From NCBI GenBank assembly GCA_973895155.1, contig OZ316899.1:4405241-4469240 (forward strand): DNA of 64,000 bases, written 5' to 3'. The notes under the pieces were generated by a model, which made no database searches, was not told the origin of the DNA, and worked only from the letters and a program-made list of their open reading frames with translations. Below are positions 6,695 to 64,000 of this stretch, one piece after another; the stretch's first letter is position 1; every line of letters begins with the position of its first letter. The position numbers and the translations under genes are program-made. The DNA comes from Marsupella aquatica. Lineage: Eukaryota > Plantae > Marchantiophyta.

Positions 6695-8400
6695 CTCCAC
6701 TCTGTCAAAGGCCTTCTCAAAATCCAGTTTCAAGAAAAGAGCCGGGGTCCTAGTGAAGTTAATCCAGTCTTTAACCAGCCAGGTGAGAGATATTTTCCAG
6801 AATGTGCCGCCCAGGGATAAAGCCTGTCTGTTGTGGACAGATCAGCCTAGGTAGTAACATTTTTAGACGAAGGGTTAGCAGCTTAGCCAAGAGCTTGTAC
6901 ACAATAGTTAATGCTCTCCAGTCCCCCAGTCTTCGCTTATCAGTTTTCTTAGGAATAAAACGAATAACCCCATCTTTGATGTTGAAAGCAAGATGTCCTG
7001 TCCTCCAGAAATCACAGATCATGTCATGAAAGTCAGTCTTCATGAATTCCCAGCAAGCCCTGAAGGTCTCTGCAGTCATGCCATCAATACCAGGAGCTTT
7101 GTCACTAGGAAGAAGTAACAAAGTGTCGTGCAATTCACGTAGAGAAGGCAGCTCTTCAAGCATTCTAACCTCAGCCGCAGTAGGGGAAAAATGTGTGTTC
7201 CTACTCAGAGTGCCGCGTGCTGTTCTCTGCTTCCTCAATTCTTCTCCTTCCAGTAATGGCGGTGAGTACAGCTCCACACAAAAACGTTGTACCTCTCCAA
7301 CAATGAGTCGCTCCTCCCTTAATTCCGTGCCACCATCAACCACAAGATATTCCATCTTTTCTCTGAGCCATTTGGCCTTAATAGTGGAGAAATAGAACTT
7401 AGAGGGTTCGTCGCCTTGGCCCAGCCATTTAATCCTAGATAGCCGGCGACAGTGGTGAGCATCTTCAAGTTCCATTGAACGTACATTATCTTCAGTATCC
7501 ATAAACTCTGTGATACTGTCAGTGGAGTAGTCCTCCATAATGGTTACCTTCAGAAGTCGAAGTTTGTCACGCAGTAGTGCAGCCTCTGCAGCCTTGGGCA
7601 GTGGTGAAGATTGTAGCGTCATGTAGCATTGGCAGAGACGCTGATACGCCAAAGAAAAGCGCAGATGAGGTTCAGCAAGGGGAGCGGTATCCCCAATCCA
7701 GGCAGCCTCTAGAAGTCCCAAGTTTGCAGAGTTCCTCACCACAGCAGGGTTAGCTTTGAAGTAAGAAGTGCATCGTTGATCAGAAGCAGACGTGAGCAAG
7801 GGGGCAATGCGGAAAGAGATCAGCACAGGATCATGGTCCGATAGTGCCGATGTGCCATCATGTTTGAGTTCCACCAGTTCCTCTGTCCACTGGCCTTTCT
7901 CACTAAAATAGAACCTATCAAGGCGGGATTGAGTCAACACGCCGTTACGAATCCGGCACCAGGTAAACCTGGATCCCGATACCTGACCAAGAATAGAAAG
8001 TGCATCTTGCAGGTCAAGTCGAACCTTCAGAAACCTCCAGAATTCCAATTCCCTCCCGTGGATCAACGGGGTCAAGCCAGTGGAATCACATCGGAGCTCA
8101 GTCATGTTAAAATCTCCAGTGAACACCCATCGACCTTGAGGCAATTCATTTTTCAAATCATTCCAGAGAATTGCTCATTCTCCTGGAGAGTTGGGCGCGT
8201 ACACACTGATCAGCCCAAAGGTTCCCTCGGCGTGTTCCAGCTGGGCCCAAACAGCTCTGCCCAGGTCCAGCGTACCTGATGACAGTACCTTAAGTGACGG
8301 GTGCAGTAAAATAGCTGTGCCTCCCCTGCCGTCAACGGGGGCCGAGTAAAAATGTTGATAACCCTAAAATGCTTCTCAATCTTAAATACTGGTGCAATCA
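6695..8400 (-). pseudogene. L1-like LINE ORF2 fragment (APE endonuclease plus start of RT), 3'-truncated
   Basis: SVYAP, GDFN, SRLDRFY, SDHDPV, DKAPGIDG, WRALT, QQTGFIPGR, KLDFEKAFDRV. The sequence stops abruptly after DRVE. Confidence 0.9.
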
Positions 8401-10080: not shown

Positions 10081-11267
10081 AACACACAGGAAACACAAAT
10101 ACCAAAATACCTCCACACAAAAATCACCAAAAATTAAAGTTTGTGGAAGTGGAAATTAAAATCACCTCCGTGTAGCTTGCAAGGTAAGATTTCCAAAACA
10201 CCAAGCGACTTTGCAAACATACATTTGAGCTAGGAGTTATTATTTGTTTAGTGCAAGGGTTAAAACATTGTTTTGGAACCCTTGAGAGAATCTTTTAAAG
10301 AAAAACTTCCACAGACCTTTGTTTTCTAAACCAATTTTCAGGCCCCTTCCCTACTCCCTTGGGAACACTTGTGCAAAAGAATCTTGGAAAACAAAACTTG
10401 TTTGCACTTTTGAATCACAAAAATAGTACCAAAAATGGTACCATAACACAAAACTGTTCACATTTTTACACAGCTCTCGTGTAGAGGGTGCGCTCTACAC
10501 AACCCTTGTGTAGAAAAAAGGTCTTTGTCACCTTGAGAAAGATTATTCAGGCCATTTGTCCAAGCCCTATTTGGCAGAACAGACCAAAACTTCTACGCGA
10601 GACACCTCAAGGTAAAATGCACGTAAACCTGTTTGTCCATATCTTTTTGGCCCAAAAAGTCAAGGTCCTACACGAGCCTTGTGTAGAAAAACATCCTCCG
10701 CAATGTGCACCGCTTCTTTCATATCACAAATGGCAGGAACTTTGATCAAACATAACTCCGTAACCGGACCTTTGTTTGATCTCCACTTTACATCATTGGA
10801 ATGAGAACAACAAAAGCTATATCATAACCAGTCTTCCAAAGTTAATACCAAACTTTGATTTCTGCCCTAATCCGATTCAACACAACCGCATCATGCAGCT
10901 CACGGCTATGGCTACCACCAAAAAACTTTTGCTTTTCTAGCCCAGTGTTGCCTCAATCAACATTGCTCCACACTTGTTTGATGAAAAAGCAATGAGATAT
11001 CCACCAAAATATAGTGTGCATTGATGTGCACAAGAAAGTGTAGGATTATTCACCTAATAGTACCTTTAGAAACACATTGACACATACAATACTTCCATTG
11101 AAGTTTTAGTCGGGAAATTGTCACCTATTCCAATTCAAAACCTCCAACGCATAATGACCAGTGACACAATCATATACTCATCAACAACAATCCAATCTGT
11201 CACCCCCCCCGATTTGACACAAAGAATACTCTCACCATTGTCCACGCAACCAAATGTCAAACACAAA

Positions 11268-18103: not shown

Positions 18104-18461
18104 TGTGACGCCACCGGTACGGCGGTTAATGAGTGATTCGGTCTAACTGCGCTTAGCACGCGCGTTAGGAGTGTCTTAGGCCGCTATTATTAGCATAACA
18201 ACAGTATTTAGGTAATCATTATGGATAGGACATCATTAGGCAATAAGGGGGAATTCAGGTTCGGACTGGCGGCGGGTCGCTATTCGCACACCCGGGTTAC
18301 GAGCGTGGAGGGGCCCCTCCCTCGGGTCCGTATAACGTACTTAAGAAGCGGCCACTAACACGCGCTGACTCAGACCGGCGGAGTGGCCGGTACACCACAA
18401 GCGTGAGCGGTTCAGCCTATGGGCATCGAGGAGACGTCGGGGGATCGACAAGCCCTCAAGG

Positions 18462-18468
18462 TATAAAA
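18462..18468 (+). promoter_or_regulatory. TATA box of the LTR-encoded gene
   Basis: TATAAAA about 100-110 nt before the ATG. The same spacing occurs in A1 (3021-3027), B1 (about 28648) and B2 (about 39853). Confidence 0.6.
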
Positions 18469-18569
18469 GGGGAGCCAACCCTTTGTAGTGCACCAGTCCA
18501 TCAGTCCACGCGCCAGCTTCGACCCCAGCTCTCTCGTTCGCTCTAAGTCGCCACTACTATCTCCTCTGA

Positions 18570-21218
18570 ATGTCGCACACGATCCTCTCCAGCTTGGCCA
18601 TTCGATTCTGGACGCAGTTCCTATCTACCGGAAGGCACTTGGCCGACTCATTAAAACACGCCAACCCGCGCCGATACGAAATCGAACGCGAGTACGAGAG
18701 AGCCATCCGTCTAGCAGGACGACACCACTACATCCTTAACTTTGACTACCCGTCTCAGAGCGAGCTTTACCGACCAGCAAAAGTATCTGGGTACTTCTTC
18801 AACGGAGACAAATATATTGGTTTCTGGGAAGCATTGCTTCGGCTTCCGGACGAGGTCTTCAATATCCCGGGTACGATCGACTTGCAACGACATCACTTCG
18901 ACCACATCCCTGCTCAGGTTCGGGCTATCATCAATAGCGAGTCCAGCACTACCCGTTCAACAAGGTCGTCTACACTCGCTTCGGAGAACTTCTACCAGCA
19001 CCTACAGAGCTTCATGGGAACTCGGCCATCAACCAACATGACCAACTCAGTCGAACCCGTACCCGTACCCGTACCCATGCAACCTCAGGCTCAGGCTCAG
19101 CTTCAGCTTCAGCCTTAGCCGCAGCCTAGCCAAACCCCACCACCGATCGCCCAACCAGCACAAGTACGCTCCATCATCAACGTCGTGGATCTTAGCGATG
19201 ACGACGAGGCTACCCCACCCTTGACCAGGCGGCCCAGAGGAACAAGCGCTCAGGGGGCCGACACTATATCGTCCCCACCCCTTGCTCTGACCCCAGGAGC
19301 GGCCCCGACAGACAACATGGTGACCATGGCCGCCCCGGGCCCGTTACTAACGGCAGTGGCACTACCCAGGCCCGATCGGGAGGATGGGGAAGTGTCACCT
19401 TCCCCAAGCTAATCACGGGGGAAGAAGAGGAAGGAATCCACCACTGCATCCGGGTTACCGTTGGCCACGGTAGCCGTAGCCAAGGTGACGATGCACCGCA
19501 TGGGGGAAAACGTTCACAAAAACATCCTCCATCCCAAGCATGCGGTGTACCTGAAGACTCAAGGATTCGAGCACCTCGCCTCCCTCCCCTGGAACACTTG
19601 CAGGTACTACGGGGAGGACATGACGGAGTTCATCAGGAATTATGACAACGCGCGTCAACATACTCGGCTGCGGGGAAGGAGTATGTCCCTCACGGAAGAA
19701 CGGCTCAGGATGATCTTTGGGTTACCCGAAGGTGACCATCAAGTCGAATCACGGGCTCCCGGGGGCAAGGGAGCCAAGTACCAATCTTCAAGTTTTCCCT
19801 CAGAGGGAGCAGTGGACAACGGGTTCGTGATGAAGACCTGCCTCATCCCCGAGATAGCTGAGCGACTGGAGTTCCAGAGGTACGCCCTCCACATGATGGA
19901 ACCCCAGGGGGAGATCTTCGCCGCCCAAGTTATCCAGGTTGAGAACTATCGACCTAGGAAGTGGGCGTCGTACTTCGCTAAGAAATTCCATGAAGAGATG
20001 GAGCGGCGAAGGAAGATGCTGTACATTGGCGGGAAGGCGTATTTTGCTAGCCACATCGAGATCATTCTTGAGTGGTACGCCCGGTTTGATCGACAAACCC
20101 TTCCCCGTGTCAACGTTACAAAGCTGGTCCCAGCTAGGTGGGTTTTCCCGGCCTTGGAGAGACGGCCCCAACCCGAGGCCCGAAGTCCAGCGGACACGCC
20201 AGCTTCACCCACCCCACCTCCACAAGTAGCTGTAGTCGTAACCGAGGAGGTACCGGATGGGTCGGTTGTCACAACCGTTGATGCAACCCAACAAGCCGAG
20301 CTAAGTACAGAAGTCGGTACGGCGGAGGTCTTACCCGAGCCCGGGTCTCCCAAAGACCCACCGGTGGCTATTCCGGAGAACCGGACATTGCTGCAGGAGG
20401 ACACTCCAGCCCCTTCCAATGTTACGTCCCCAGGGCTGGACGTCACTGCCCCGGCCCCCGCGCGTGTTGACGTCTGCCCGTGCCCAACTCCGGACAGGCA
20501 CAACCTGGACCACCCGGAACTCTTCGTACCGGGTACATTTCTGAACGGGCTTCTGGGAGATTTCTCTCATCAAATTGCCCGGGATACCGGGGAGTTCATG
20601 GCCCGGAAGGTAGCCTGTTTCTTCAATCAGGAGTTGGTTGCCGCAGTAAAGGCAGGTCGGGCCCAGTCAGAGGCCCTTCAGAGGATAGAGCGGTACCGGG
20701 TGGAGTCCGTGTACCTAAAGAACAAAGTTGCGGCTCAAGAGGCTGAGCTTCTGCAACTACGACCCAAGGTTGCAGCCGCCGATGAGTTGTTAGCAAAGGC
20801 GCACGCTCTTACCGCCCTAGCCGAACAGGCCAAAGCTGGGAACAAGGCCGAGATTACACGACTCCAGAACCAGATTGACAGTTTGAAGAATCAAACCGTC
20901 ACCTGGCAGAAAGACCTGGAGGAGGCCGAGGAACGGGCCCAACGGGACACGGCGGAGATAGCCACGCTGCAGGCTGAGGTGGCGCGGCTCCAAACCGAGG
21001 CCGAGAAGCAGGACCAGCTGGCGGGTAAACTGACAAGCGACGCCCAGCAGCTGGAGGAGGCATGTCAGGAGACAGTAGAGGAGACGGACGCGGCGAGGCG
21101 AGAGAACGAATCTCTGCTGGACCAGGTCCAGCTCCTCAAGGCGGACAATGACAAGCTTCGAAGGCAGCGGGATGGCCGCTCCCATTCGGGCGGCTCTGGC
21201 AAGCGTGCCAGGCATTAG
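18570..21218 (+). pseudogene. LTR-encoded accessory gene, 882 codons, in-frame stops at 19116 and 19410
   Basis: ORFs 18570..19118, 19185..19412 and 19461..21218 are in one frame. Both stops are Gln codons in copy A1. Layout: N-terminal domain, Pro/Gln linker, LPW...IFGLP...KW domain, Pro linker, coiled coil, basic tail KRARH. Confidence 0.85.
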
Positions 21219-22230
21219 CAGCGGAGTAGGAATAGATTAGGATTAGGACTAGCTTAGTCAGGCTCTTGGGACAGGCACCTGCCTTAGGTACAGCAGCGCT
21301 GCCATGCTGTCTAGCCTGCGTAGATTAGGATCTTCTAATAAGACACAGCCGTTTTCCGGCCTGACTGTCAGCTTAGTTAGGACCTTAGTCAACGAATCTT
21401 TGGTGAGAGGACACCCCGTCCCTCGTCCCTTAGTATTTAGTGCACCCCTCGGTAGAGGCAGGGGGGGTTTTTAGTTGCAGAGCTGGACGTCCGCAGTATG
21501 TGCGGGGAGTCCTGACCTCTGGGAATGAAAGAGTACCAAGGGGAGGGGGTAGGACTAAGCTCGCCGGGCGAGTGCGGAGCCGGGCTCCGTTGTAGTGTGC
21601 ACCCTCGGCCTTGAACCTGTTCATTCCGGGGCTGTCGGGTCAACTAAGTGTACGCATATGTTCCCTTTGTAGTAAAATCCTTTCCCATCATTTTCCTTCG
21701 TGTAAATCGAGATTGTATGCATGTGCGCGTGTATGTGTGTGGGTTTCTCGTATATGGGTGGCAGCGCCAGGCCGAACACACTACCCGAGACGTGCACAGG
21801 GTGCAGCCTGCGGGTAAGTGGTTGCGAGCCCGGGTTGAGGACCTGTATCATCGAATCCGGATCGAAGGCGGACAGCACGAAGGCTTAGAAGCCCTTAAGC
21901 CGGGGTCGATCCTGCTATCGACTAAGGTACGTTCCGGCGGCGGAACACAAACCATACCTAGGAGGTGTCCGTATTTAGCAGTATGCGCACTTAGCGCTAG
22001 TTTACGAGAATAAGGTGCATTACGTGCTTCCCTTCCTGCCCGAACCCTCAGATTTACGAGGGATGTGCCCGTCTAAGCTGAAGTCTGAGTTAAGGCTGCA
22101 GCCGACGACGTGACATAAAGGTATTCCATGTTGCAAGCAAATAGGAGATTTTGATAGCAAGGAGAATTTTATGAGTGAGACACTAATGGTTTCAAATTTC
22201 ATTTGCTTTTTGGTGCCTTTAATACTTTTG

Positions 22231-37150: not shown

Positions 37151-39495
37151 CATATAAAGCAAGTTTTTTGATACTTACAGGGAACGGCCAACTTGGGACT
37201 ATTCTTTCCCGACAATGCCAATAACAAACTGACAGGATTTGCTGATGCTGGCTACCTCTTTGACCCCGATGATGCCAAATTGCAAACTGGCTACGTCTTT
37301 CTTCAAGGAAACAGAGCCATATCTGGTGGAGCTCCAAACAAACACTTACAACCACCTCCTCTAATCACGCAAGGATTACTGTGAAAAACTTTAAAATTTT
37401 CAACTTTTTGAGATAAGTAGTGATTCAACTCAAGTTATCTATATTAATTAGGAGCATTAGAGTAGCTAAGCATCCTCAAGTACATCCCTGTAGGTTACTA
37501 AAACTAGTTACTTCTAAAGTCATGTTAAATCGGGAGTCACAATAGACGCTTATGCGCTAATGCGCTCAGACGCATAGACGCTTATGCGCTAATGTGCCCA
37601 GATGCTTATACGCAGCCCACCCTATCGGTAACTGAAAATAGCCGTTGACAACGAGGAAGGGAGAGAGCGACTTACTAGGCCACCTGCTCGCGACCAACAC
37701 TTCCACTTCCTTGTTTTGATACCATACGCCTCAACGACCATACGCTCATACGTAGAGACGCTTATGCGTTGTGGCGCTTCTATGCTTATGCGCGATCACG
37801 CCAATACACCCCAACGTTTTGCAACTTAGAATTCTGTGGCGATAGTGAATCAAACTTCAAGAACCGTAGCTACAACTTGCCATGGCGGGCATGGATGAGA
37901 TAAGTTGCAACTTCCCCGTTCCTAGAGCTGTACCTGTGAAATATCCTGCACTCAAGAGGGATTCAATGTTATTGACTGATGCTCTAGAAGTTATGCACCT
38001 GGGAAAACTTCTATCTATTCCGTGGGCTTTTGTATGCCCAACCTATTTGCGCGAGTTTGCCGATGGATCACAGATACGAGAAGAATTTCAGGATACTGTA
38101 AGGGCAGATCCCGAGAAGTGGAACTTGGAGTTCATTGCAGACGCTTTTAGTTGTCCCTTACAAGGCTGTGGTTTACAATCTGGAAAGAGTACTCTATCCG
38201 ATCCGATGTTTGCTGGAATGAGAAATTCAAAAGCGGGATGGAAGCTTAATAAATGTATTGATTATACCTTCAAGATCATCCTTGAGTTTCTGGTACCAAT
38301 TTTTCATCCCACTCGACCATATATGGTATCTGTATCCTTGGCGAATACGTTTGTTACTTCATGGAAAGGACTTGCTGAAGTTAATTGGAAATTGTTACTG
38401 AGACACACCGTCCTTAGCCAAATCAATGTTGTACAAAATGGAAGGCCTACACACCTCTCAGTTTACCTCAGTCAACTCGACTGGTATGGGGATTGTTTAC
38501 TCCCAGAGGAGAAGGTCGAAAGGATTGCACTATTGGAGGATTTAGATGTGGAACACTCAGAGACTGATTCGAGACCCGATGATCTGAGAATGGAGGAAAC
38601 ATCAAAAGCTGGTCACCAGGAACTATGTCATCTGCTCCGGAACTTATGGATGAGGATATTAATCCTAATATTGAGATTACACCTTACCATACCAATAGTA
38701 GTCCGACCGACCACACTCCTCTTCCTATTATTCTTGCCAGTGAACATAATCATCCAGAGAAATTGATTGATGATGGGAAAACTGTTTTTAACCAGGATAT
38801 AGTAGACAGTTTGTCTAGAATGTTGACTTGTGATCCAGAAGAAATCCTCACTATTGTAGATAAATTAATGACTGCTTCTGTTACTCCATATAGTCTCACT
38901 TCCATTTATTCACCAACCCAGAGTCCTATCCAATCAAATTATCCATCCACTGAAGGACAACCAGAAGCCCCTAGGACTACAGATCACCTTTCTCTGACAG
39001 ACATCCAGATTCCCGATACTATCATGGGATCCCCGATAGATGAGAGATTACCACCGCTAGGAACAGATCTCCAACAAATTGTGAACATCTCGGGGGGGTC
39101 ACTATATGAAGGGTCATACATCACGTGCGACAGTTTGGGTCATTTATGACCCCCCTAAGTCACTTTCTAGAAAGTTGTACGGCACCAATCATGTGATGAC
39201 ACGTATGCATTTTGCAATTAAACAACCCTATATTTCCATAGAAGACTTAATAAGTCTTCCGCCAAAACCATTTAAATGGTCCTATACTTCGTCGCACATG
39301 ATATGCCACTTCCATGGAAGTGAGCCCCCCGAGGTGAACACTTCACCCCGACATTCAGCTGAGTATTACTTTAATCTTGTAGGTGAGATATGCAAGATGT
39401 TGGAGTGTGATCCTGATCATTTGATCGAGGTATTAGATGAGGTTATGTATAGATTATCACAAATTTCAAACCATGACCAGCACTTGGAATACTGT

Positions 39496-48442: not shown

Positions 48443-49238
48443 CTTAAAACATTTTGGGGGTTTTTAAGTAAACATGGCCAAATTTAAAGAAATAAAGGGT
48501 TTTGCAAAGAAAAATAAAAATTTCACTTCTAAGTTAGGGGGTCAAACCCTAAAATGCTGCACGTGATGTATAGCCCTCCATATAGTGACCCCCCAAGATC
48601 AAGTCAATCAGTTCTCACAATGGGCAAAGCCCGTTACTTACTTGATCGGCAGTCTCGAACAGACAGACATTTAGACCATTTTCCAAACATTTAACAACTC
48701 TCAAGGGTGTTTGTCTTTTCTAACGACAGAAGTACATGCTTGTTTAAAATTTAAAATTTTGTGTTGCCCATTACTAGCTTAGGGCGCTAGTAAAACTGGA
48801 AGATGCAAGGATCCGGAGTTTTGATGTAATAAACCAGGGTCTTGTGTGGAATGACCAATATTTTGTATTGGATTTATGATGGAGTGGTGGGCCCCATTCT
48901 TACAGGCAGTAGATCAATGCTCATGTGCATGTGTAATAGAGGCTTTTTGCTGTTTTGTAACACTAAGATAAAAAATAAAAAATCGTACAAGTAAACAGTT
49001 TCTCGTAACCAGATTTAATGTCATTAGTAAGCCAACTACTCATAACAGCAAATCTGTTTATTAGTTTCTGTCACACTGGTTATACCCAGCCTTACTATGC
49101 AAAGGCAAAAGGATCATATATATATATGGATATCAACTCCACCTTATGGAAACATACCAAAATTTGCAAGAATTTACCTGTGAGTGCAATATGTTTAGTT
49201 CAAGAACAATAATGCAAGAAAACATGGAAAAGCACTAC

Positions 49239-51627: not shown

Positions 51628-52672
51628 CTAAATTCTTTCTGTAATCTGAAGTACTAAGTCCTGCCTACTCTTTACTCCTGTGTTTATTCTACAGAATTTT
51701 GACGTTTGTCTGTGAACTTTGCTTACTACTTTCACAAACTCCCTAAAATTTGTGGTGAATAGCCCATGCGCAGCTCCTAGGCCTTTTACGTATTGATTAG
51801 TTTCATGCTCAGTGAAGTCTTCCTTACGAGACATCCACAATATGATCTCTATGTGTCGAGGAGTAAGTTCTGAAGTTGTCAGTTGGAGAACATCATATTT
51901 GCACACTGGCCATGACGCAAAAAGCGAATTAGATTCCCCAAACCCCTGCAGTTGAGTGTATATCTGTTGATACTGTTTCCGGACTTCAGCTAAATTCAGA
52001 CTGGACCATTTTGGAGTGTTTTGCCACAAATACACATGCACGTCTCTTGCCAAGGCCAACTCCTGCAACATTGGTTGAAGTTTGTTGCTTATAAACGTAT
52101 CTGCAAGGAAACCATTATTATTGCCGCTGAAGCAATCACAAAACAACGTCGAGTATTTGGGGTTAAAGAAACTTCTATGAGGTAAATCATCAAGAAGGAT
52201 GGTGTTGCTGTCATTATAAGGTGCGCTTGTCCGATCTCCATTTAAAATGAGGTCATCCCAAATATTTTTCAGTAATTTCACAAAGCAACTTTTCCCTTTG
52301 TTTCTTCTAGCCCCATAAAATATCCCAGTCGACAAGGCTTCCGCTTCAGTTCTCACAAAGACAAATCAATGCTTCTCGTTGGGAAACACTTTCTCCAAAA
52401 TCTCATGCACATTATGATATACGGCACAGGCCCATATCCCCACATCAAATGTCTGAAGACATCATTCAACAAAGCACCGCATTCCCGGTCTTACATAGAT
52501 GATTCTATTCTTTAGAAACAATGTCTCCCCGTTTCAGTATTTATATCTCTAAGAGACTTTTCTCGCACGCCCGATATTTGCACAATATGTAAGACGACAT
52601 TCATGTCAAGTACGAGAAGTTTACGAGGAACGGTGTTTTCTATAATAGTTGCCATATCGTATGTTACAATAT
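51628..52672 (-). pseudogene. FCP1/NIF-like HAD phosphatase domain
   Basis: RKLLVLDMN, YVRPGM..FDVGIW, VKLLKNIW, NTILLDDLPHRSFFNP. The N-terminal part has stops. Confidence 0.8.
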
Positions 52673-52807
52673 CTGTAGAGTGATGAAACAATAAATGAAC
52701 ATCAATATCATAAAGTCAATGCAAGAGCATAACATCAATTACGACGCGTTGCAGCGTATGGAAATCTGACGATAACCTATTCCACACGAGAATTGCGTAG
52801 ATCTAAC

Positions 52808-53408
52808 TCAAATGGTGACGATAAAGGCTTAGAACAATATTCCTCCTTTCAGCATCCATGTCCTTGGCTTTGAAATCAATAGGCTTCTCCCTACTCCGGT
52901 AATCGGCAAATTTCATGACAAACACTCCGCAGTTGTAGTCATCGGTTTGAAGAGGGATGTCATTACAATAGTTTCTCGGCTACGACAAAGCATTCAGTTC
53001 CTTATGAGTTTTGAACATGGCTTCATCATCTAGATATCTTGCTAGGTTCTCAAGAACTTGAGGGTTATCTTCGTGCAAAGAATCCAAATAGTCCAGTTTC
53101 CTAAGACCCATGTTAATGACGACCAGTGCCCAATGGTTATGTCCCTCATGAATAGGGACCATGACCATCTCTACATCAGTCAAAAAGTACTCCAACTTTG
53201 AGGTCCAAGTTTGAACGTCGTCATACTTATATCCACCTCAAGCAAGTTCCAAATAGAACCAAGTATCAGAAAGATGAACCTGCGGGAGGTTGGTACCCGC
53301 GGATTCTGCTCTCGAAGCAATCAGACCAAAATAAGCATCCAAAATTTCAGAAGTTATCCATTGCTCGGGACCTAGACATGCCATCTCGCGACGAGTTATG
53401 ACGCATCC
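52808..53408 (-). pseudogene. Ulp1/Peptidase C48 SUMO protease domain
   Basis: EQWITSEILDAY, DTWFY, YDDVQTWT, VPIHEGHNHWALVVI, YLDSL, IPLQTDDYNCGVFVMKFA. The H/D/Q/C residues are present in one frame with only in-frame stops. Confidence 0.9.
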
Positions 53409-54099
53409 ACTAATTGTTGACAAAACTAAATCCTGATCAAAGTCAGGGTTGAGGCAAAAGTCTATCGCCACATCATCATTCAGGTTGAGAGAAGTGGGAA
53501 AGAGTGAATTGGCACCTGCCTCATTCGCAGGTTCCACTACAAGTTCCATGGCAACATTATCAAAATGTCCGATGATGGGCTTGACCTTGCATGGACCCTG
53601 ATTTTCTGCCCAAGTGTGGGGAGGGGATGGATTGACGATGTTAATGGCCTCTTGAACTCCAGTGACAACTTGAAGGTAATTGGAAGGATACTCAGACACA
53701 ATCGGTGCAATATCATTTACAATTGAGTCCACCTCGCCAAACGACCCCACACGAGGCTCGCGTAGAGATAGAGGTATCCCACCATCATTGTGTTCTTCCT
53801 CCACAAGAGGTCCTTCGGAACTCCCTAAGTGGTGGATTGGTCTTTGGGCCTCACCAAATTCCCATGGACGACGAATCTGTTCCCCAACATTAATCATTCC
53901 AACACAAGGATCAGAAAATCTGTTATCGTCTTGATGGGAGACTGTTCCAATGACATGATAGTGCCTCCCTTCCTTTGCGCCACTTGCATTAGAGTTTTGC
54001 GTTGAGCTGTCCTCCCCTCCTGGAAGTTTCCATAAGGATTTTGCGAATTGTGCGACACCCTCCAACGACTTGAGATTCTCCGCATAAGCCGTGAGGTCC

Positions 54100-54850
54100 A
54101 TCACATCCCCCCTTTCCGAACAAAAAGAGAAACATTCCCTTTCCAGAAGAAGGGCATTCTTTAAAACTTGCCCACCAGTAAAGAAGTCCAACACAATTTC
54201 CTCCTTCTCGGAAAATCAAAGAATGATTGCCTTGATAATTCTGCTGGGCTTAATGTTTGATGTAAAGGTTCTGCCACCGGGGGTCCAGAAAGAATGAGTC
54301 TATACAAGCAATCTCCAAGAGCGGATTTTCGCTTTGCTGCATCCTCTTCCTTGGAAAGGCCAGTATAATCTTCTTTGGCTGGTTTTGCCAGTTCAAGCTG
54401 ATCCATGGATTCCGCCAAGAAATGACCTTGAAACCCTCTAAAATGTTTTTCCCAATCCGGTTCTCGTTCCTAGGAGACTCCAAGGAAAACAATGGACTCA
54501 ATAATACCCGACATAAAATGCGATGACCGGACTTCTTTTGCACTCTTCCAATAGCTTCCATACTCCAGATGAGCAATATAACTAGAAGGTGGATCAATGA
54601 TAGCTTCAATAATTCTGGCTAGCAAGAGACCTGGGTGCACAAAAAACACGACAGTCACCAAGTCATTGGCGGGGACACTCACGACAGTCTTCAAGAAATT
54701 CAGCAGCTCCGATTGTGTCCAAGTATTCTGAATTGAGTGTGTCATATCGACAGTAGCAAGTGACGCATTAATCCTGTCCCTACAACTCGTCAAATTAAAA
54801 GGAGGCTCCGCGGAAGCAAGGAGATTCCCAGAGTAAAATATTCGATATGG
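54100..54850 (-). pseudogene. Beta-class N4/N6 amino-methyltransferase-like domain
   Basis: SAEPPFN (motif IV-like, 54808-54797) precedes KPSRIIKAIIL*FSEKEEIVLDFFTGGQVLKNALLLERECFSF (motifs X-I-II, like KPxxL..S..GD.VLDPFxGSGTT..A..R). One frameshift lies between them. Confidence 0.7.
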
Positions 54851-55599
54851 ATCCATTCTCTCGCGGATAGTTCACCAAAATTTCTTTTGGTAAATATTCC
54901 GCAACCTATTCTTCAAAGGTTCCGGCATATTGGATTTTGGAGAGACCTTGACTAAACTCTTGAAATAAGCATTGTCGACCATTGAGCAACATTGATCCAA
55001 TTCTTCATTTGTGAAATTAAACTCGTGGACCACGTTCGACCAAACGGCCCCAACATTGAAAACACTTTCATAGGTCTCGCGGTAGAACCGCAAGATTGCA
55101 CCTTTCAGCTTTTCCGTATACTTGGCTTTCATGGCAAGATCGGACATTGAAGGTATATCTGTCCTTGCATGTCTTCTCTTCATCAAGAGAACCTCTCCCG
55201 ATTGAACTTTATTCAAGATAGAGGTAATGTCAGATTCTTGCGCCCCCTCAAATACCATGAATGTTGTCCCAGTAAGTTGCTTTGCTTCCCTCTTCTTCCC
55301 AGTCATCTCTCCATTGTTGTCAGGTAAACTACCGGACAACCAACTATTGCAGACCGACATCCACAACTTATAGAGGCTCTCCGATGCAAAAAAAGATCCA
55401 GTTGTATTCGCTGATGCTACTCACTTTCAGTGTGACTTTGGCCAACCCTTCGTAATCTTGAAACCCAACAACAAATGGTAAGAACAACATAATAAACCAA
55501 ACCTTTGGAGAAGGTATCTTAGAGCCAAGCCTCGGATTCTACACGAGGCTCGTGTGGACCACAAAAGAAATTATGGTGTCAACAAGAACGGACCTGGAA

Positions 55600-56194
55600 T
55601 TCCTAGGATTTTTGCCCTGACGGCACTGGCTGAACTGGTCGATTCATTTCCAAATATTGCATTCTCGCATGCCTAACCTGGTCGATGAATGGTGATGAGA
55701 AACGATGTGCTTCAGCTTGCAACTTGTTTGCATGACTGTGAAATCTCAACCAAGACCTTAACAGGTGTTGACCCCTTGAGAATTCTTGCATGAAAGAATT
55801 TGAGGAGGTTGGCAGTCTCAACCAGAGATGGTTATGTTTGAGAACTCCAAATGATTTTCCTCGTGGCCATAGTCGAGTGTTGACCACTTATTGCAAAATA
55901 TTGATACTCGGATAATTGTTTAGAATCTAAATCTCTGACGGAAAGATTGATAAGACTGTAAACACCATTAATCATCTTGTAAGGCACGAGATCTGCAGGC
56001 AAAGGTTCCTGACCGACATTTGAAATCATCAATTGAACAAGATGGTTGACATGGTCTTCGTTGAGTAACGGCTCATTCATTTTTGCCGACGGAGGATAGA
56101 TATTCATCAAAGGAACGAGGAAGAATTTTGACAGCCCACCAGCATCAGTTTTGTTGCAAAGTCTTTTATGCCCTCTCAAGTCTGGCTCAATCAA
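55600..56194 (-). pseudogene. ParB/Sulfiredoxin-like domain plus helical extension
   Basis: IYPP..LNEDHVNHLVQLM..EPLPADLVP..YFAISGQHSTMATRKI resembles the ParB N-domain with a GxHR-like motif (here GQHS). Confidence 0.6.
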
Positions 56195-58179
56195 CGATTA
56201 CTTTAGAACTTGAGTCAGCATTCATCTCTCCCATGTCATCCACGACATCCATCTCCACTTTCTTACGTTGTTTCTTTGGGATTGGGACACCGGTTTCCGG
56301 TGCCTCCTCCTTTCCCTCAGTCTCTCTGTTGCGGCCCCTTCCACGCTTGGACTTCTCCGATCTTGTCACCCCAATGTTTGTGGATACGTCTTGCACTTGA
56401 GTATTGACCTTTTGAGAAGTTGGATTTGGTGCAGATTTTAGGGCACCTTTTGTTTCACGACAACGGAAGGTTTTGCAGTGGAAGCCTTCCGAGACAATTC
56501 CTTCTTAACGACACCTTTTGATACGGGTTTTGCTATCTCTTCCACAATTGCCTACTTCTTTTGAGCCTTCTTCCTGACAACCTTCTTTTGTTCTGGCATT
56601 TTGGTCGCTTTAATCTTCTTCTATGGTTGTTTGGACTTTGCGATATGTGGCCCTTTCACCTCAGTAGAGCTAGTGCGGATTTTTGCTTGAGGGACTTTAG
56701 CTTCCTCAACCTTCTCTGGAAGAGTGATCTTTGAAGACAATCTCTTCTTATTGGAAGGAGGAGCGTCTTCTTCCATTTGCTTTCTTTTCTTTTTCTTCAA
56801 CGAATGCACCTCCATCTCTGTTTTAGAGTCCTTTTCCTCTTTAGTCTCTGAGCCTCCCACCTCCGCAAGTTCTTTATCCACGGCTTGGATCTCATCTTCA
56901 AAGATCTCCTCTGTTCCAACCAACTCAGGACTCAAAGAGTCATTGGGAACAATGCTCGGTTCATCTGATGTACCCTGTGAACTTGATGATCCTAAATCTG
57001 AACTCAACGACAATCCAGGTTCCTGTACAACTTTGCTTGCCTTGAGATTTGGGCCACCACCATGATGTCTGTGCCTTTTCTGATTCAAATTGAAGGCCTT
57101 CACCACAGGATGGGTTGCAACCCAACGTTTAATCCTTTCCTCGTCAACTGGATCTGGGAAAGCAATTTCCGGAATGATCTCAATCTCTTGCCGGAGGTCA
57201 TCTTCCGGTAAAGATAGAGACATGACGTAAACAACATGCCTGGTTGCAGAAAGGTGAGATTGAATTGATAATCTTCAAAGAACAAAAAACTAACCCTTCC
57301 CAACCCTGAAACAATATCCTCAGCAGTGAGAACATTATCTAGATCCATGAAACGATGAGTGGATGGATTAAAAAATCCTAAGGATGTTATGTTCATTGTC
57401 GCATCATTTGGCTCAAGACAATATGCGCAACAATATTGTTCAATGGGAAGAGAGAACTCTCTATATCCACAATCAACGCGGTCCTCCACCGTCACTATCA
57501 GAAAGACCTTCCCCTTCTGGTGCTTTGGTGCTTTTGAAATCCTACAATCGGCAAGCACACCCAAGTACTTCCAAAACCTCTTGGGCTTTGCAATAACGAT
57601 CCCCCGCAACCAACACCTCCAAGCGTCACCCTCCAGACACATTTCAAAAGACCATGAATCGACGATTGGATTTTGGTGGCTAATAGTGCTTTGACTTAGC
57701 GGCTGCGGTAGGCACGGGTGGCTGAAACAAACATACGGGAATCCTAGGAAAGAACCAATACGGAAGTTTAGAACAGAGTCCAAGATGTCAAAACAAATTC
57801 CAAGATTTGATTACTCAAAAAAATGGACAATCCGTCCAAAAAACAACTCATTCGACCAAAATGGAATTTGCCCGCTCGACTACCATCTTCTAAAGTTGGG
57901 GCACATATTCATCTGGGTGCCTTGATCTCCAACTAAACAACTCGTCTAGTACTAAGTCTTGAGAGATGAGTTCTAGGAAAATGTCTCCTAGGCTGCTTCC
58001 TTCTTCAGCCTCTTGATAGTCTGGAGGTGGCCTTCCTCCTGGGCCGTCAAACTAATCTCTTCATCTTTCTCCTTCACAGTTTCTCGCAGGGTCTCAAGTT
58101 CCTCGAGGACATCCTCAGTCATTTGGGACTCCTTCTCATGTTTATCTTTGATCGATTTCAAATGTTTCAAGGCATTGCG

Positions 58180-61100
58180 AAAGGACAGCCATCACCAGGG
58201 ATTCTAGCTATAACGAGCTGCGAGACTACATCACCGAACTATATCTCAGCGAGGAAGGGCTTAGATCGGTAGTAGAGGCGATTCTAGAGGTTCCAGCTAA
58301 GTTCTTTAAGCTGAAGGGCAACCAGCGGCTTACTCAAGCGGAGTTCGACAAGATTCCGGGGTACCTAGACCAGCAGATCGCAACTGAAAAGCGCCAAGAA
58401 GACATCAGCAGACAACGGGAAGCGGCGCGTAATCTCACGTTCCTCGGGGAAAGCTCCAACGCCTTCAACTGGGATAGGGCTACCCCAGCGCCTCAACCGA
58501 TGACCACCGGAGTACCGCCGAACCAGTCCCAAGTCCATCCAGTAATCAACGCGGAGTGTTCTTCGGGTTCCGAGCGAGCTAGTCCGCAACTCGAACAGCG
58601 TCCTCGTAAGCGGTCAAGGACTACGATGGCCCCCGAATCAACACGGACCGACGCCACGCCTGCACCTGCCCCGGCAAACCCCCCGACCAACCAGACCCGA
58701 CGGCCCCTGGATAACCCGAAGTCCAACTTATTACAGGTAATCCGCGTCCCCGAGGTAGTCTGGATCGCGATCAAGAAACTCGAACATGCGGACTATCTCA
58801 AGGAGCATCAGTTGGAGCGGTTCGCCCACTTACTATGGAGGCCGTGCGCCGCCGGGCCGAAGGAGATTTGTGAGTTCATCTCCAATTTTGACACTGATGC
58901 GTCAACCACCAAGGTTTCAGGGCAGACCTTATCACTCACGGAGCATCGGTTAATTCAAATTTTTGGCCTACCAACCGGGCCGGTGCCGGTGGAAATCCGA
59001 ATTCGGGATAAGGAGTATACGCCGCGGCGCTTCAAATCCGAGGGTAAGACGGACAACGGATACAAGCAGGGGGCGTGCACCAACTTAACCTGTATGGAGC
59101 GGCTTAACTTCATACGGACTACCCTACACATGATTGAGCCACGATCCGAGATTTCCCTCTGCACGATAGTGCAGGTGGAACAGTACAAACGACGAAACTG
59201 GGCCCAATTCTTCTACCGAAGATTCTCGGGGGAGCTGAAGCGGGCTCAGGGTGGTATGGCTATTGGAGGGAAGACTTACTTGGGGAGTCATATCGCCATT
59301 ATCCTCGCCTGGTACAAGGCACAGCGGGAGGCCAGAGGAAAGAATACGGCCACCTCAGCCCCGGGTAATGTCACCCCCGCCCCAGAGGAGGCAACCCCAA
59401 CTACGCGGACTACTGACCCTCGGACAAACCCCGAGCCGGAAGCCCCGACTAATACTCCGCAACCGCCCCCTGTGGAATTTCCACCGCCTCCTTCCGTTGA
59501 GCCTCCGCTACCTGCAGTACAACCACCCCCAATCCCTCCACCACCCGAAGAAACCTTCCCCTCCCCAGCGCTGACTACGGAGGAGCTCGTTGCCCCTGCC
59601 GAGGAACCACCGGTACCCGAGAGGATGGAGGACTACCAAGTAGCCCCGGGGACCATGGCCTACGACCTGGTCCAAAAGTTTAGCCAGACTATGTCTGGGG
59701 AGTTGGCGACATACATCGGACAACAAGTCTCGGCGTACTTTTAGCCAGCCTTCTTCATGTTACAGCACCAACCACGGATCGTCAGCCGCTTGGAAGAAGA
59801 ACTCATGGCGAAGGGGAATGAGATCGGGCGTCTCCAGATGCTGGTAGAGCACCTCGAGGAGGAGGCAACGACCCGCCGCGAGGATTTAGTCCGCACTGTC
59901 GAACAGAGGGACGGACTAACCCAGGAGTTAAGCGGAGCGCAGGCCGAACTCAAGAAGCTAGACGACACCGTGCTTCAATTACGCTCAGAATCTTCGGCTC
60001 GGGTTACCAGCCTGACCGACCTCAACAAACAATTCCTACAGGCAGCACAGCAGGTGGCTAGTCTCTCCGCCGAACAAGATAAATTGCTAGCGCAGGACCA
60101 GGTCCATCGCGATGCCATCGACCAGCTCAACTTGGAGGTGGCGCGGCTCCAGACTGAAGCCGACGAAGCTGCAAACGAGGCGGAGGAAGCATTACGGGAC
60201 AACAAGGCTTTGCAGGACCGCGTCACCCTGCTCGTCCTCCAGCGGGGAAAACCTGGGCCCACCTCTGATCAAGGCGGCTCGAGGTCTCGCCCCGACAAGG
60301 GGACCAGCCCTGGTCCAACCACTGCACACACGTAAGGGGTAGTTAGCAAAGGGTAGAAGCAGGCGCCGCGCGAAGCGGTTAAGTCAGCGGCATCTTTTAG
60401 TTAGGCATAACGACAGAATGACTGTCATTAGGCGCCGATTAGCGGCAGTAGGAAGAATTAGGGCCGGTCAGTTAGGATCAGCCAACGTAGGATTGAGTCC
60501 ATCAATGGACTAGAGTTTGTCAGTACGCTTGGCCGCTGCCATTTCGGTTGGCACACTCGTAGTCGACGGTCAACCGGTCAGTGCAGCGCGACCGGTAGTC
60601 AGCAGTTAGTTAGTCAGTAGGTAGTACCCCGGAAGGTAGTATCCTCCGGTTCTCTTCCACTATGGTAGTATTTAGGCTTCCCCTTCCGTGATGGGAAGCG
60701 GGAGAAGGCTTAGTTATCTCAGCAGAAGAAAGGCGAGGCACGGGGAGTCCCGGCCTGAGTACGGTCAGAGCGTACCAAGGAGTGAGAGCCAGAGTCGAGC
60801 TTGCTGGGCAAGTGCGAGGCAGGGCCTCGTAGAGACTGGGCATCGACTGCCGTTGGGCCTGCTGACCCCCTTTGAAGTCGAGTCAACCATGTAAACTGAT
60901 GCTTCGCTGAGTAAATGTAGTCTTTTCCCCTTAATGTTTCTGAGAGTAACTGGTGTTGTGTGTATGCTTTGTCCGGGCAAAGGCGCCATTTTAAGGGACG
61001 TACCGGGTGCGGACTAATGGTAGGGATTGCCGCTCATTGCATGTCACAAGGTCCTGTCACGTCGATGGCTTGAAAAGCCCCAAGTCGGGAGTTAGTCCGC

Positions 61101-61318
61101 GTCACTAACTGAGGGAAAATTCCAGCGGTGGAAAATAAATATACCTATGACAAGTACGAATTATGCGAGTGTTATACCAGTAAGTATAGCGGCTTAGCCC
61201 GACTTAGGGCTATTGAAGGTCACTACACACCTCCTTGCCCGAACCCTCACCCCTACTGGTGGTCGAGGTCGCACCACGACACTAACCCGGATTTAAGGCC
61301 CAGGGTAGGGGTGCGACA
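58180..61318 (+). mobile_element. Giant LTR, family C, 5'-truncated, with accessory ORF about 58180-60335
   Basis: Ends ...GTGCGACA and shares the terminal CCCGAACCCTCA block with A and B. The ORF aligns with A (EAILEVP..FDKIP; IFGLP; DNG; IGGKTYLGSHI..WY). The left end and left TSD are missing. Confidence 0.8.
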
Positions 61319-62139
61319 CACGAGTCTCATGTAGAAAACTTAGTACTGGGTCTCGCATAACACAAAACTAACTACGATAATGTATCTACACAAGACTCGT
61401 GTGGAAGGAACCGCTGAAATTTGAATTAAAAACAAACAAAGAAAAGAAAAACTAAAGATCTACACGACTGTCGTGTGGAAATACCTTCAACCTGGTGAAA
61501 GTTGCGACTGCCATCTCCCGGACCTCCGATTCAGATAGATTCTCCATGAAACCTCTTTGCACGTGTGAAACAATTTGCAAAATAGAGACGGAATTGAGCA
61601 GAACTCATTGGGAGAGATGAATGAGCAAAAGGGCGGAGAATGAGCGAGAGGGCAAAGATGAAGGAATGAGTGAATGAGCGAATGTGCTTGAAATATATAC
61701 CTGACACGAGGAATGTGCGAGCGTGAAAATGGGCTAGCGTGAAGCGTGAAGACATCATTAAGAGTGCCACCAAAAATATCGATGAATCTTACCAAACGAC
61801 AATTGTGCAGAGCTATTTGCCTATCACATTCGAGCATATGTGCTTATTCTTTTGTCATTATCTGACATGATTAATTGCGCCACCAAAAATATCAAAAAAT
61901 TGTACCACACGACAATCTAGTAGAGCGGCCACCCTATCACTTTTGTGCATTATATTTGGGATTTCTATCTAGGAATGGTATTTATCGATTAGTCGTCCTG
62001 ATTCTCTAGTCATTCTCTCGCCAGACGTGAATGCTTCTGAGGACAAGTTCTGGCACGGGTGGTTCCAAGGATAGGTTTTGGCACGGGTTTGAGTCCAAGG
62101 ACTGCTTTTGGGCGCCCAATTGGTACATCCCTTATGGGA

Positions 62140-62255
62140 TTTCATTCCTATGACTGTCTCATTCCTATGACTGTCTTGTTCCTATGACTGTCTCATTCAT
62201 GTGACTGTCTCGTTCTTGTGACTGTCTCATTCCTGTCCGTGTCTCATTCTTGTCA
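62140..62255 (+). repeat. 17-bp tandem repeat CATTCCTATGACTGTCT, about 7 units
   Basis: Head-to-tail degenerate units read directly. Confidence 0.85.
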
Positions 62256-62537
62256 CTCTTGGAGAATGTTTTTTTAGGACAATTATCTGTACCTCATTTC
62301 TTTCAAAAGTTCTACTAAATAGGGGTACTGTAATAGGATATTTAGGATTTCAAAGAGGAATTAGACCTCATTTCTTCCATAACTGCCCTAATTTTAGAAT
62401 TAGACTTCATTTCTTCTTAATTGAGGACAATTGAGGGTCCTGACATGGGTTATGTCTTGGTATTGAGGAATTGGACTTCAATTGTACCACAATTTATCAG
62501 TTGGGTGGTTCCTTAATGTGATATTACATGGGTTGGG

Positions 62538-62625
62538 GATTTGTACCCTGTTGGAATTTGTAGCCTACTGGAATTTGTACCCTGTTGGACCTTTTACCTT
62601 GTTGGAATTTGTACCCTGTTGGACT
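62538..62625 (+). repeat. 17-bp tandem repeat GGAATTTGTACCCTGTT, about 5 units
   Basis: Head-to-tail degenerate units read directly. Confidence 0.85.
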
Positions 62626-62916
62626 CTCCTTCTCTCTTAGAGTGAAGCATCGAATAATAGTGGGTCCTCTCCTTACTTCTTGTGGGACTTTTTGTCATAA
62701 ATGCATATGATTGTGATAATTCCGTGACTTTTGGGAGATGTTTAGACCTAACCTAATGCTCTACACGAGGCTCGTCTAGCCATCAAACCTCCTTGTGTTT
62801 CCTTCCACTAACTATATTCGTTAGTGATTCTACGCGAGCCTTGTGTTGAGGGATACTGACGTGCATGTTTTATTCTGGAAAACCAGGTCTTTTTCTACCG
62901 GTGAATAATTCCCATC

Positions 62917-64000
62917 TTGTGTCCACACGAGAGTCGTGTCAATGTTACTGTCAACCTCGAATCGGTCAAGAATATGTTTTCCCCTGGGGATCGAGTTCAT
63001 CTCTTATTGAACGATGAACTGGTTGCGGGTGGGACGGTTTTCAGCATTACTCCCTCAAACTCTTGCCACAACATTCTGATTGGAGAGCATAGAATCAGTG
63101 TTTCTGTTGAGGATGCATTCTTCCACCTTGTTGAGTTACCTTATCCAAACACAAGGGCGGACCTGGTCAGTGAAAGCTTAAATTTAGTAATTTTGTGGGA
63201 TCGGTCCAGTGTCAGGTTTGCGCAAAGAAAATTTCCAGTTTATCCAAATGAAAACCAAGAAGGCTCGGTTTATCCAGGTGACAACCAAGAGGAGATTCCT
63301 CTGGAGCGAGAAGCAGGTTTTGGGGAGCAAGATGCCATGGGAGACACTATCCATAGTCAGGACAATGTTCTCTTGAGCGAGGACCTGAGCAATCGAAGTA
63401 GGTGGTTCAAGAAGTTTTCTTTGCTTTACGGAGACGATGATGAGACATTACTGGCTTGAGGGTGTATCACAAATCCGTACCCTCAAGCATTGATTAACAA
63501 TGAGAGAGTTGGAGATGATCATGTCGAGATCAATATTCTCACACTGGCCGCCGACAACATCTCAAAGATGACGTTCCCTTATTTTGTTGAGGGAACGCCT
63601 TGCACAGTCAAATGGCCTTTGCAGAGAACTCGGATCGAGCTTGGAATGCAATTTTTAAGCAATCTATTGGATCAAAACAACTTCCGGAATCCCGAGCAAG
63701 AAATTGTATCATATGTTAAACCAAAGCGAGGATATAATAATCAATGTCGCAACCCATAGGCTCCTGAGGAGAAGGAAAGGAAGAAGATTCATAGAAGGCG
63801 TAACAGAAAGAAGACTCGGGAATCTATTGATGCTGTCTTCTAGGTTGAGTGCTGCACAAAGAATTGTTGTAGGAGACAACAGTGGGAAGTGGTCAATCAG
63901 GTTAGAGATGAATTTTATGATCTCTCTCACGCCGATCAATAGACGTACATTTTGAACCATCTACACGGGAGGGATACGGAAACTATCGAGGCTGGGATGA
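62917..64000 (+). pseudogene. Rightward DNA-transposon gene: two En/Spm Tnp1-like domains and the start of a Cys-rich transposase-like domain
   Basis: LVAGGTV..CHNILIG..VSV..LPYP..LVILW, repeated as LLA*GCITNP..INNERVG..VKWP. Then CCTKNCC..VRDEFYDLS..Q*TYILNHL in another frame, resembling DUF7869-type transposase N-termini (tentative). Runs off the window. Confidence 0.55.

Follow-up and report, generated by a model that had tools for sequence, protein, structure and literature searches.

A stretch of 64,000 nucleotides (nt) of Marsupella aquatica DNA (Marchantiophyta; assembly GCA_973895155.1, contig OZ316899.1, positions 4,405,241 to 4,469,240) carries the remains of a multidomain gene. In the order of its reading, the gene combines a ParB-like domain, a DNA methylase-like domain, a Ulp1-type protease and a NIF phosphatase-like unit (Table 1). 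The whole stretch is referred to here as the window; all positions are positions in it, and all parts of the gene lie on its minus strand. The same order of domains had been given in an earlier note made from the letters alone, in which the locus was described as a transposon-borne polyprotein that loads on DNA, marks it, removes the small ubiquitin-like modifier (SUMO) and dephosphorylates. The gene is present as a chain of stop-free pieces in shifting frames that runs from about 57810 to 51631. Its upstream limit is thus near 57810 instead of at 61548, as had been stated, and the region from 57.8 to 61.5 kilobases (kb) holds other content. As argued below, a high-copy repeat family, most likely of DNA transposons, is probably represented here by a dead copy of its accessory gene (or of two such genes), whose product would have acted as a DNA-targeting scaffold.

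Table 1. Parts of the decayed gene and associated repeats, in window coordinates (aa, amino acids)
Feature	Position	Strand	Basis or remark
Stop-free piece of 236 aa, possibly the N-terminal region of the protein	57103..57810	-	No Pfam match; no similarity to relatives
K/E/R-rich low-complexity region, 5' of the ParB-like domain	56190..57274	-	Pieces 56624-57274 and 56190-56504; no Pfam match
ParB/Srx-like domain, motif FAISGQHS	55606..56137	-	tblastn to P0016 (residues 74-248) and to L002 ORF1
Intron 1, 137 nt, GT..AG, phase 1	55457..55593	-	Homology with P0016, P0018 and L002
Helical middle domain, with a 1-nt slip near 55388	54875..55456	-	tblastn to P0015, P0008 and P0016
Beta-class amino-methyltransferase-like domain	54012..54871	-	Representative search, Pfam match of a relative, Foldseek, VIA-align and profile searches
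Linker without recognisable domain, in frame with both neighbours	53364..54011	-	Within piece 53241-54215; no homologues found
Ulp1/SENP-type C48 cysteine protease domain	52815..53363	-	Pfam PF02902; stops at 53238-53240 and 52980-52982
Intron 2 (135 nt, in phase, GT..AG) or intergenic spacer between Ulp1 and NIF	52673..52807	-	
NIF/UBLCP1-like haloacid dehalogenase (HAD) phosphatase-like unit	51631..52672	-	tblastn to the NIF ORFs of relatives
Two palindrome triplets, possible cis sites of the element	61315-61479, 62760-62942	.	Spacing about 70 nt; they flank 17-nt tandem arrays

Relatives of the gene were found with HMMER: the 133-aa piece at 54473-54871, searched against 1.8 billion representatives, gave 13 proteins about 30% identical to it. 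Cluster look-ups and one further search provided the full-length relatives P0016, P0018, P0019, P0020, P0015, P0013 and P0008, none of which is annotated. P0016 (1009 aa) is a single uninterrupted open reading frame (ORF) on a 4.5-kb contig, and P0018 is 1219 aa long. When the relatives were placed on the window with tblastn, they matched the ParB-like domain at 56137-55618, the middle and methylase-like parts at 55466-54012 and, through a downstream ORF, the NIF unit at 52518-51643. In the loci L001, L002, L003, L004 and L006, a NIF ORF of the same strand lies some 170-450 nt after the core ORF, so that the linkage of the core to the NIF unit claimed for the window recurs in its relatives. 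The ratio of nonsynonymous to synonymous substitution rates (dN/dS) was 0.23 for the core (L001 compared to L005) and 0.15-0.20 for the NIF unit and the methylase-like part, with dS saturated in the most distant pairs. These ratios indicate that both the core and the NIF unit are under purifying selection in the relatives.

The relatives are located on short contigs, and none was found in phage records or in IMG/VR viral contigs. A scan of JGI metagenomes added one locus only, L007, which is decayed. In the AlphaFold database, the best matches spanning both the ParB-like and the methylase-like parts have A0A388 accessions; other matches included A7RT40 and A0A812S5F4, the latter with the same core plus a SET domain.

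Profile and structure searches indicate that the methylase-like part is homologous to the beta-class N6-adenine (N6A) or N4-cytosine (N4C) DNA methylases. The window's own methylase pieces had no Pfam match and retrieved nothing from the PDB with phmmer. Among the relatives, P0013 passed the Pfam model PF01555 (N6_N4_Mtase; 29.2 bits, cut-off 26.7), and four others fell just under the cut-off, always on the part that holds motifs X to I. A profile of the family searched against PDB sequences found M.RsrI (E 5.7e-7), with KP...VLDFFSGG of the family aligned to HPTQKP...VLDFFAGSG of the enzyme, and hhalign matched the same region to the F-plasmid methylase (E 2e-5). An AlphaFold model of P0016 (residues 70-760) had predicted local distance difference test (pLDDT) values of 80-96 across the middle and methylase-like parts; in it, the middle domain, which has no Pfam match, is helical. 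Searched with Foldseek, this model matched beta-class DNA methylases, N6A or N4C, in each of the first 47 places, with METTL14 after them. With VIA-align, it gave Z scores of 17.1 for CcrM, 16.8 for M.MboIIA and 16.5 for M.RsrI, over about 200-220 residues. The nearest ESM Atlas clusters of the methylase-like part were all PF01555, from bacteria and phages. The Rossmann-type amino-methylase fold in the beta-class order (motifs IV-VIII, then X, then I-III) was therefore recovered as had been proposed, and so was the phage-like layout of a ParB-like domain followed by this fold.

The catalytic motif of such enzymes was absent. The earlier note had taken the letters EPPFN as motif IV. They do exist at 54808-54794, where they lie 15 residues upstream of the strand-4 motif, in a loop that matches a '...lP..s' segment before strand 4. 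That loop is variable, with MKPEVFDE, TIPNLVNE and similar sequences in the relatives, and EPPFN, which is not conserved in the family alignment, was rejected as a chance match. In place of DPPY, strand 4 of the window reads VDMTH (54751-54737). In the P0016 model, strand 4 is CAIVD and the next residues are F-A-R-R; the family pattern is A-I-V-D-F-[SAGT]-[RK], with its D and R invariant in 7/7 full-length relatives. PP(Y/F/W) was absent from the alignment of all seven. VIA-align paired residue 36 of RsrI with residue 394 of the model. DPPY of M.RsrI, which we take to be at about residue 65, would then fall within a few residues of the strand-4 Asp of the family. Loss of PP(Y/F/W) in amino-methyltransferases argues against transfer to N6A or N4C. 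Because the strand-4 position reads D-F-x-R across the family, amino-methyl transfer by these proteins is unlikely, and the claim that the protein marks DNA is not upheld.

The fold retains its KP helix and the DFFSGG region. KPSRII...VLDFFTGG was found at 54250-54175, as reported before, with one stop inside it (54216-54218). DFFTGG of the window is DFFSGG, without variation, in the relatives. Of the two Gly residues in the motif I pattern FxGxG, the first is retained; the second is represented by Gly, Gln or Ile, one residue out of place. As the DFFSGG stretch and the acidic residue after strand 2 are invariant in the relatives, binding of S-adenosylmethionine (SAM) may survive in the family.

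ISGQHS, the motif given for the ParB-like domain, is present at about 55891-55874 in a 121-aa stop-free piece. The reading frame of the domain is frame 1 as far as about 55737 and frame 0 beyond; a stop (55832-55834) and a slip of 4 nt (55733) come between the two, and in the family alignment the domain is tiled by three pieces of the window. Four intact relatives and the window share the pattern F-x-(I/V)-P-(V/L)...H-V...(F/Y)-x-A-(V/I)-(S/T)-G-Q-H-S-A...R-I-L...F-K-S-x-F...H-A-R-x-Q, which, together with the predicted order of strands and helices, fits ParB/Srx. GQHS is invariant in these five sequences, with Ser in the place of the Arg of the nucleotide-binding motif GxxR or GxHR. The model of this domain had a pLDDT of 55.6 and no Foldseek matches. 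A wide VIA-align scan of 48,161 chains with it gave only low Z scores (3.0-3.6, at most 3.8), with ParB/Srx proteins taking 7 of the 36 best places: Arabidopsis sulfiredoxin (29% identity over 73 residues), SerK, PadC, SbnI, Atu1540, pNOB8 ParB and KorB. With the language-model features of the ESM Atlas, the domain matched ParB_N clusters with scores up to 0.91. The nearest Atlas neighbours of P0016 residues 72-250 (0.95) were unnamed sponge and cnidarian clusters and an ascomycete cluster with DUF3723; DUF3723 is a conserved accessory gene of fungal Starship elements. Altogether, we consider a ParB/Srx fold fairly likely. The resemblance to ParB noted earlier is in this sense retained; that the protein loads on DNA like ParB is not, given the missing P-motif arginine and the weak evidence for the fold.

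The Ulp1 domain was the only part of the window recognised by Pfam, apart from a match to DUF488-N3i (E 0.0035) that was rejected, since it lay partly in the wrong frame and was repeated in no intact relative. Ulp1 is colinear over three pieces in one frame, covering positions 1-212 of the PF02902 model (E 0.23, 3e-14 and 8e-8), with scores of 53.7 and 32.8 bits compared to a curated cut-off of 20.7. The middle piece matched human SENP2 (E 4.5e-11) with the catalytic His and Asp aligned, and the last piece holds the Gln and the Cys. The four residues listed for this protease were thus all found, in HNHW, YLDS and LQTDDYNCG (pieces 52983-53237 and 52806-52979), and by its sequence the domain is probably an active-type SUMO protease. 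As described before, the motif I stretch and the start of Ulp1 share one stop-free piece of 325 codons (53241-54215); therefore, the fusion of the core to Ulp1 is a property of the DNA and not of a gene model. Ulp1 was found in none of the relatives. These end instead in a small conserved C-terminal domain (...EYGSF), which a hidden Markov model scan did not find in the window. The comparison indicates that the Ulp1 fusion is specific to the window lineage, in which an in-frame SENP-type Ulp1 has replaced the usual small C-terminal domain of the core.

The NIF pieces of the window are too broken for a Pfam match of their own, and they were identified by tblastn with the NIF ORFs of the relatives (E 3e-28), which themselves match PF03031 with E-values of 1e-15 to 2.6e-19 (56-70 bits, cut-off 21.8). 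The window copy has a possible ATG at 52655, one frame slip near 52531 and two stops. A profile of the NIF family matched UBLCP1 (E 5e-14 over about 190 residues) and CTDNEP1 (E 7e-4). Consequently, the phosphatase-like domain read from the window is real, but its nearest solved relative is UBLCP1 and not FCP1, and its motif I has DxN instead of DxD. This motif is LVLDMN in the window (D at 52607, N at 52601) and LDLN or LDCN in those relatives that have motif I, compared to LDID in UBLCP1 and LDLD in CTDNEP1. As Asn replaces the general-acid aspartate (the second one in DxDxT) in the whole family, normal turnover by the NIF unit is doubtful, and the step of dephosphorylation is not upheld.

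Both introns proposed earlier have GT..AG ends and a pyrimidine tract. Intron 1 is well supported by homology: the ORFs of P0016 and P0018 continue through this point without a break, and a canonical 95-nt intron of L002 lies no more than one codon away from it. In the window copy, the homologous frame reaches the intron only with one more 1-nt slip upstream of the donor. Intron 2 is in phase and contains the stop codon of Ulp1 (52803-52805); to judge from its sequence, it is plausible. Joints at either proposed intron were absent from the Logan contigs, as fits DNA runs. In 5/5 relatives with this region, a stop codon precedes the NIF unit, which forms an open frame of its own. In L004 (3117-3272) and L006 (4011-4115), on the other hand, the NIF domain, DxN included, begins upstream of the first in-frame ATG, and the NIF exon is probably spliced to an upstream exon there, or else starts without ATG. 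Most loci have a good acceptor-like site a few codons before an RKLL motif. Since the domain precedes the ATG in L004 and L006, and given these acceptor-like sites, splicing to an upstream exon is favoured. For the window, sequence features leave it evenly balanced whether Ulp1 and NIF would be spliced into one polyprotein.

The window copy itself is a pseudogene, as had been recognised, with about ten stops and seven frame slips in total. The methylase-like region alone has a 1-nt slip near 54288 and three stops: at 54872-54874, where it meets the preceding domain, at 54470-54472 and at 54216-54218. Logan contigs of four runs from two organisms were placed on 51850-57849. Their number per run was 600-1850; these short contigs, 85-99% alike, covered the whole of these approximately 6 kb, in line with the membership in a repeat family that the earlier note had assumed. 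Transitions exceeded transversions several-fold among these copies. The stops at 54872-54874 (GGA in other copies), 52980-52982 (inside Ulp1; TGG in other copies) and 55832-55834 (removed in other copies) are private to the window copy, and the frame switches are explained by indels at 55733, 55388, about 54288, 52531, 57259 and 57766. The last two, of 5 nt and 1 nt, distinguish other copies from the window in the upstream piece. The K/E/R-rich region is similar in composition to the N-terminus of P0018. Within the window, no further copies of the element were found. Searches of the ESM Atlas with the window's own pieces returned noise, and word-based homologue searches with its 182-aa and 325-aa pieces returned nothing.

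The element is associated with a 21-nt palindrome, TCYACACGAGNNTCGTGTRGA, that has 23 strand matches in the window compared to 0.01 expected. Nine copies lie between 52781 and 62942, including one in intron 1 (55538-55558), one in the putative intron 2 (52781-52801), one in the linker and the two triplets of Table 1. Three more form a distant triplet at 10465-10687, where no other similarity to the element was detected. Between the upstream triplets, 17-nt tandem repeat arrays (62125-62260 and 62541-62623) resemble the subterminal repeats of a DNA transposon. This palindrome is absent from the relatives. Just upstream of the first ORF of L002 (40-143), another palindrome, of 23 nt (AGGCTCGCGAAATTCGCGAGCCT), occurs in three tandem copies spaced by about 40 nt; the arrangement is analogous to that of the window and the sequence is not.

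The surroundings are a transposon landscape, with large nested repeats in most of the window. A Gypsy-type pol at 3356-6733 (minus strand) has an ORF of 1126 aa with reverse transcriptase, RNase H, integrase zinc and integrase core domains. There is a 3.4-kb inverted pair (22-3385 and 18104-21467, 94% alike), and three tandem units of about 10-11 kb are 65-93% identical (18.1-22, 28.3-32.2 and 39.5-42.9 kb). Two 47-nt inverted repeats (39093-39139 and 48548-48594), which are 85% complementary and separated by 9.4 kb, are probably the ends of a different DNA transposon adjoining the studied element. Upstream of the gene, 58500-60335 (plus strand) carries an intact ORF of 414 aa, Pro-rich at both ends, followed by a coiled-coil ORF of 192 aa. 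This block has a G+C content of 0.56 compared to 0.43 around it, its ORFs had no Pfam match and no similarity to the loci of the relatives, and it may be a separate, younger insertion.

Because the core recurs under selection in other eukaryotes without the catalytic motif, it looks like a DNA-targeting accessory module and not like a working methylase; DNA targeting and recruitment, and not DNA marking, is its most likely role. In the mechanism that we infer, a probable ParB/Srx-like domain, the helical domain and the beta-class methylase fold, with DPPY replaced by D-F-x-R, would form a DNA-binding scaffold, possibly directed to the element's own 21-nt palindromes. By means of this scaffold, a deSUMOylase would be brought to the chromatin of the element together with a second partner, phosphatase-like or phospho-binding, and there they would counter silencing or aid transposition. 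N6-methyladenine (6mA) or N4-methylcytosine (4mC) would not be deposited by the module. Several findings weigh against this reading. The assignment to ParB/Srx rests weakly, on low-scoring fold matches and language-model matches: the Pfam model ParB_N matched nothing in the family (the sole match was DndB in one member, E 0.02), the family-profile search of PDB sequences retrieved neither ParB nor Srx chains, and hhalign of the ParB-like profile with F-plasmid SopB and a second F-plasmid ParB gave a probability of 0.1%. Since the relatives lack Ulp1, the function of the core does not need it. Neither a transposase nor terminal inverted repeats with a target-site duplication were seen for the element in the 48-64 kb region of the window, past whose end it may extend. 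Finally, the invariant polar residues and the retained SAM-loop region could mean a real enzymatic activity of an unknown kind and not a scaffold.

Other explanations have to be set against these same data. An active toolkit, made as one polyprotein in which ParB loads, the methylase writes 6mA or 4mC, Ulp1 de-SUMOylates and an FCP1-type enzyme acts on the C-terminal domain of RNA polymerase II, would account for the fold and motif order of the beta class, the conserved motif I region and acidic residue after strand 2, the intact Ulp1 residues and the lack, in L004 and L006, of an in-frame ATG ahead of the NIF domain, a point in favour of a spliced fusion. It is nevertheless quite unlikely, as no family member has (D/N/S)PP(Y/F/W), EPPFN lacks conservation, the arginine of ParB is missing, NIF has DxN where UBLCP1 and CTDNEP1 have DxD, the nearest phosphatase is UBLCP1 and not FCP1, and in 5/5 relatives NIF is a separate frame after a stop. 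The degenerate catalytic motifs, like the stops and frame slips throughout the window copy, could also suggest functionless cargo, that is, fragments of host or foreign genes captured by a transposon (Pack-type), and capture of Ulp1 is common among plant transposons. What makes this very unlikely is that core and NIF remain linked in lineages only 30-50% identical, with long intact ORFs and dN/dS of 0.15-0.23, and that the non-canonical motif residues are themselves invariant.

That the family is not a transposon at all, and is instead a viral module that became endogenous (of the giant-virus or virophage kind) or a host gene family that expanded and turned repetitive, seems unlikely to us. 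In its favour, fusions of ParB to N6_N4 methylases are typical of phages (PMC12704722), as Atlas matches also show, no transposase or terminal repeats were seen in the window, and the short contigs of the relatives are of unknown context. However, no relative appeared in viral contigs or phage records, L002 has a spliceosomal intron at the corresponding position, the neighbourhood is made of transposons, and the transition-biased decay of the diverged fragments, hundreds of them in each genome, agrees with a methylated transposon family. A DNA-targeting accessory gene of a DNA transposon is the explanation that we favour. A wider version of it, tentative and on present evidence doubtful, is that eukaryotic mobile elements have long carried this module as an accessory system, which arose from phage ParB-methylase proteins and is distributed in streptophyte algae, cnidarians and perhaps dinoflagellates. 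In it, the pseudo-methylase would read element-specific palindromes, as ParB reads parS, and tether chromatin-modifying partners, here Ulp1, with which the element would escape silencing.

To our knowledge, accessory genes with an action on chromatin are a rarity among transposons, and only a few, VANDAL VANC and the red-algal PAG genes among them, have been studied. The present analysis defines a conserved and unannotated module in which a ParB-like and a helical domain precede a beta-class methylase fold devoid of the catalytic motif, with a UBLCP1-like unit coming next. Purifying selection acts on the module in several distant eukaryotes, and one lineage has gained a SUMO protease in it. 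It is a clear candidate for a prokaryotic DNA-modification protein repurposed as a DNA-targeting pseudoenzyme, and it advises caution in taking annotations of an 'N6/N4 methylase domain' in eukaryotes as evidence for 6mA or 4mC.

No paper was found that describes this architecture or its linkage to NIF, and the family was compared to known systems part by part. Plant DNA transposons with a C48 protease include VANDAL (VANB), KI-MULE and CACTA elements. Unlike these, the Ulp1 described here is fused in frame to the ParB-like and methylase-like core, and by its sequence it is of the SENP1/2 type. As for the core, fusions of ParB and N6_N4 methylase domains are a phage hallmark and are enriched in phages (PMC12704722). 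The family resembles the phage and prophage proteins (PF02195 + PF01555) in its N-terminal ParB-type domain followed by a beta-class fold, and its motif X-I region is nearly identical in pattern to those of M.RsrI and the F-plasmid methylase. In contrast to the phage fusions, it is eukaryotic, has a spliceosomal intron and a helical insert of about 200 aa between the domains, carries D-F-x-R for DPPY and Ser for the ParB Arg, has Ulp1 and NIF as extra partners and had no sequence match in the phage records or IMG/VR.

A methylase fold kept under selection without its catalytic tetrapeptide is also found in METTL14, in ciliate MTA9 and in the methylase domain of DIRS1, the last being an inactive domain in a mobile element (PMC4738411). 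The family differs from them in belonging to the beta-class N6_N4 clade and not to MT-A70 or PCIF1, and no active partner methylase was seen in its loci. For the NIF unit, the best solved match is UBLCP1, from which the family differs in having LDxNG in place of LDxDxT, no ubiquitin-like domain and a long conserved C-terminal extension. The best fold matches in the AlphaFold database extend over both the ParB-like and the methylase-like parts (E 4e-14 and 1e-13) and include uncharacterised Chara braunii proteins with automatic names only, such as A0A388MEC1 and A0A388LX61, auto-named 'DNA methylase N-4/N-6 domain-containing protein'. The A0A388 prefix, which occurs in at least 14 of the top 23 AlphaFold database rows, is used for proteins of Chara braunii (PMC11982790).

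The Plavaka (CACTA) transposons of red algae carry accessory genes in which PAG2 combines PF01555 with SET and PAG3 a ParB-like domain with a 2-oxoglutarate (2OG) oxygenase; these genes adjoin inverted-repeat arrays, and most copies are degenerate (10.1101/2025.02.11.637652). Compared by description only, the two systems are alike in having accessory genes with PF01555 and ParB-like domains beside repeat arrays. They differ in that both domains are here in one protein, with Ulp1 and NIF as partners instead of SET and 2OG oxygenase. The combination of the same core with SET in A0A812S5F4 hints at a link to the Plavaka genes.

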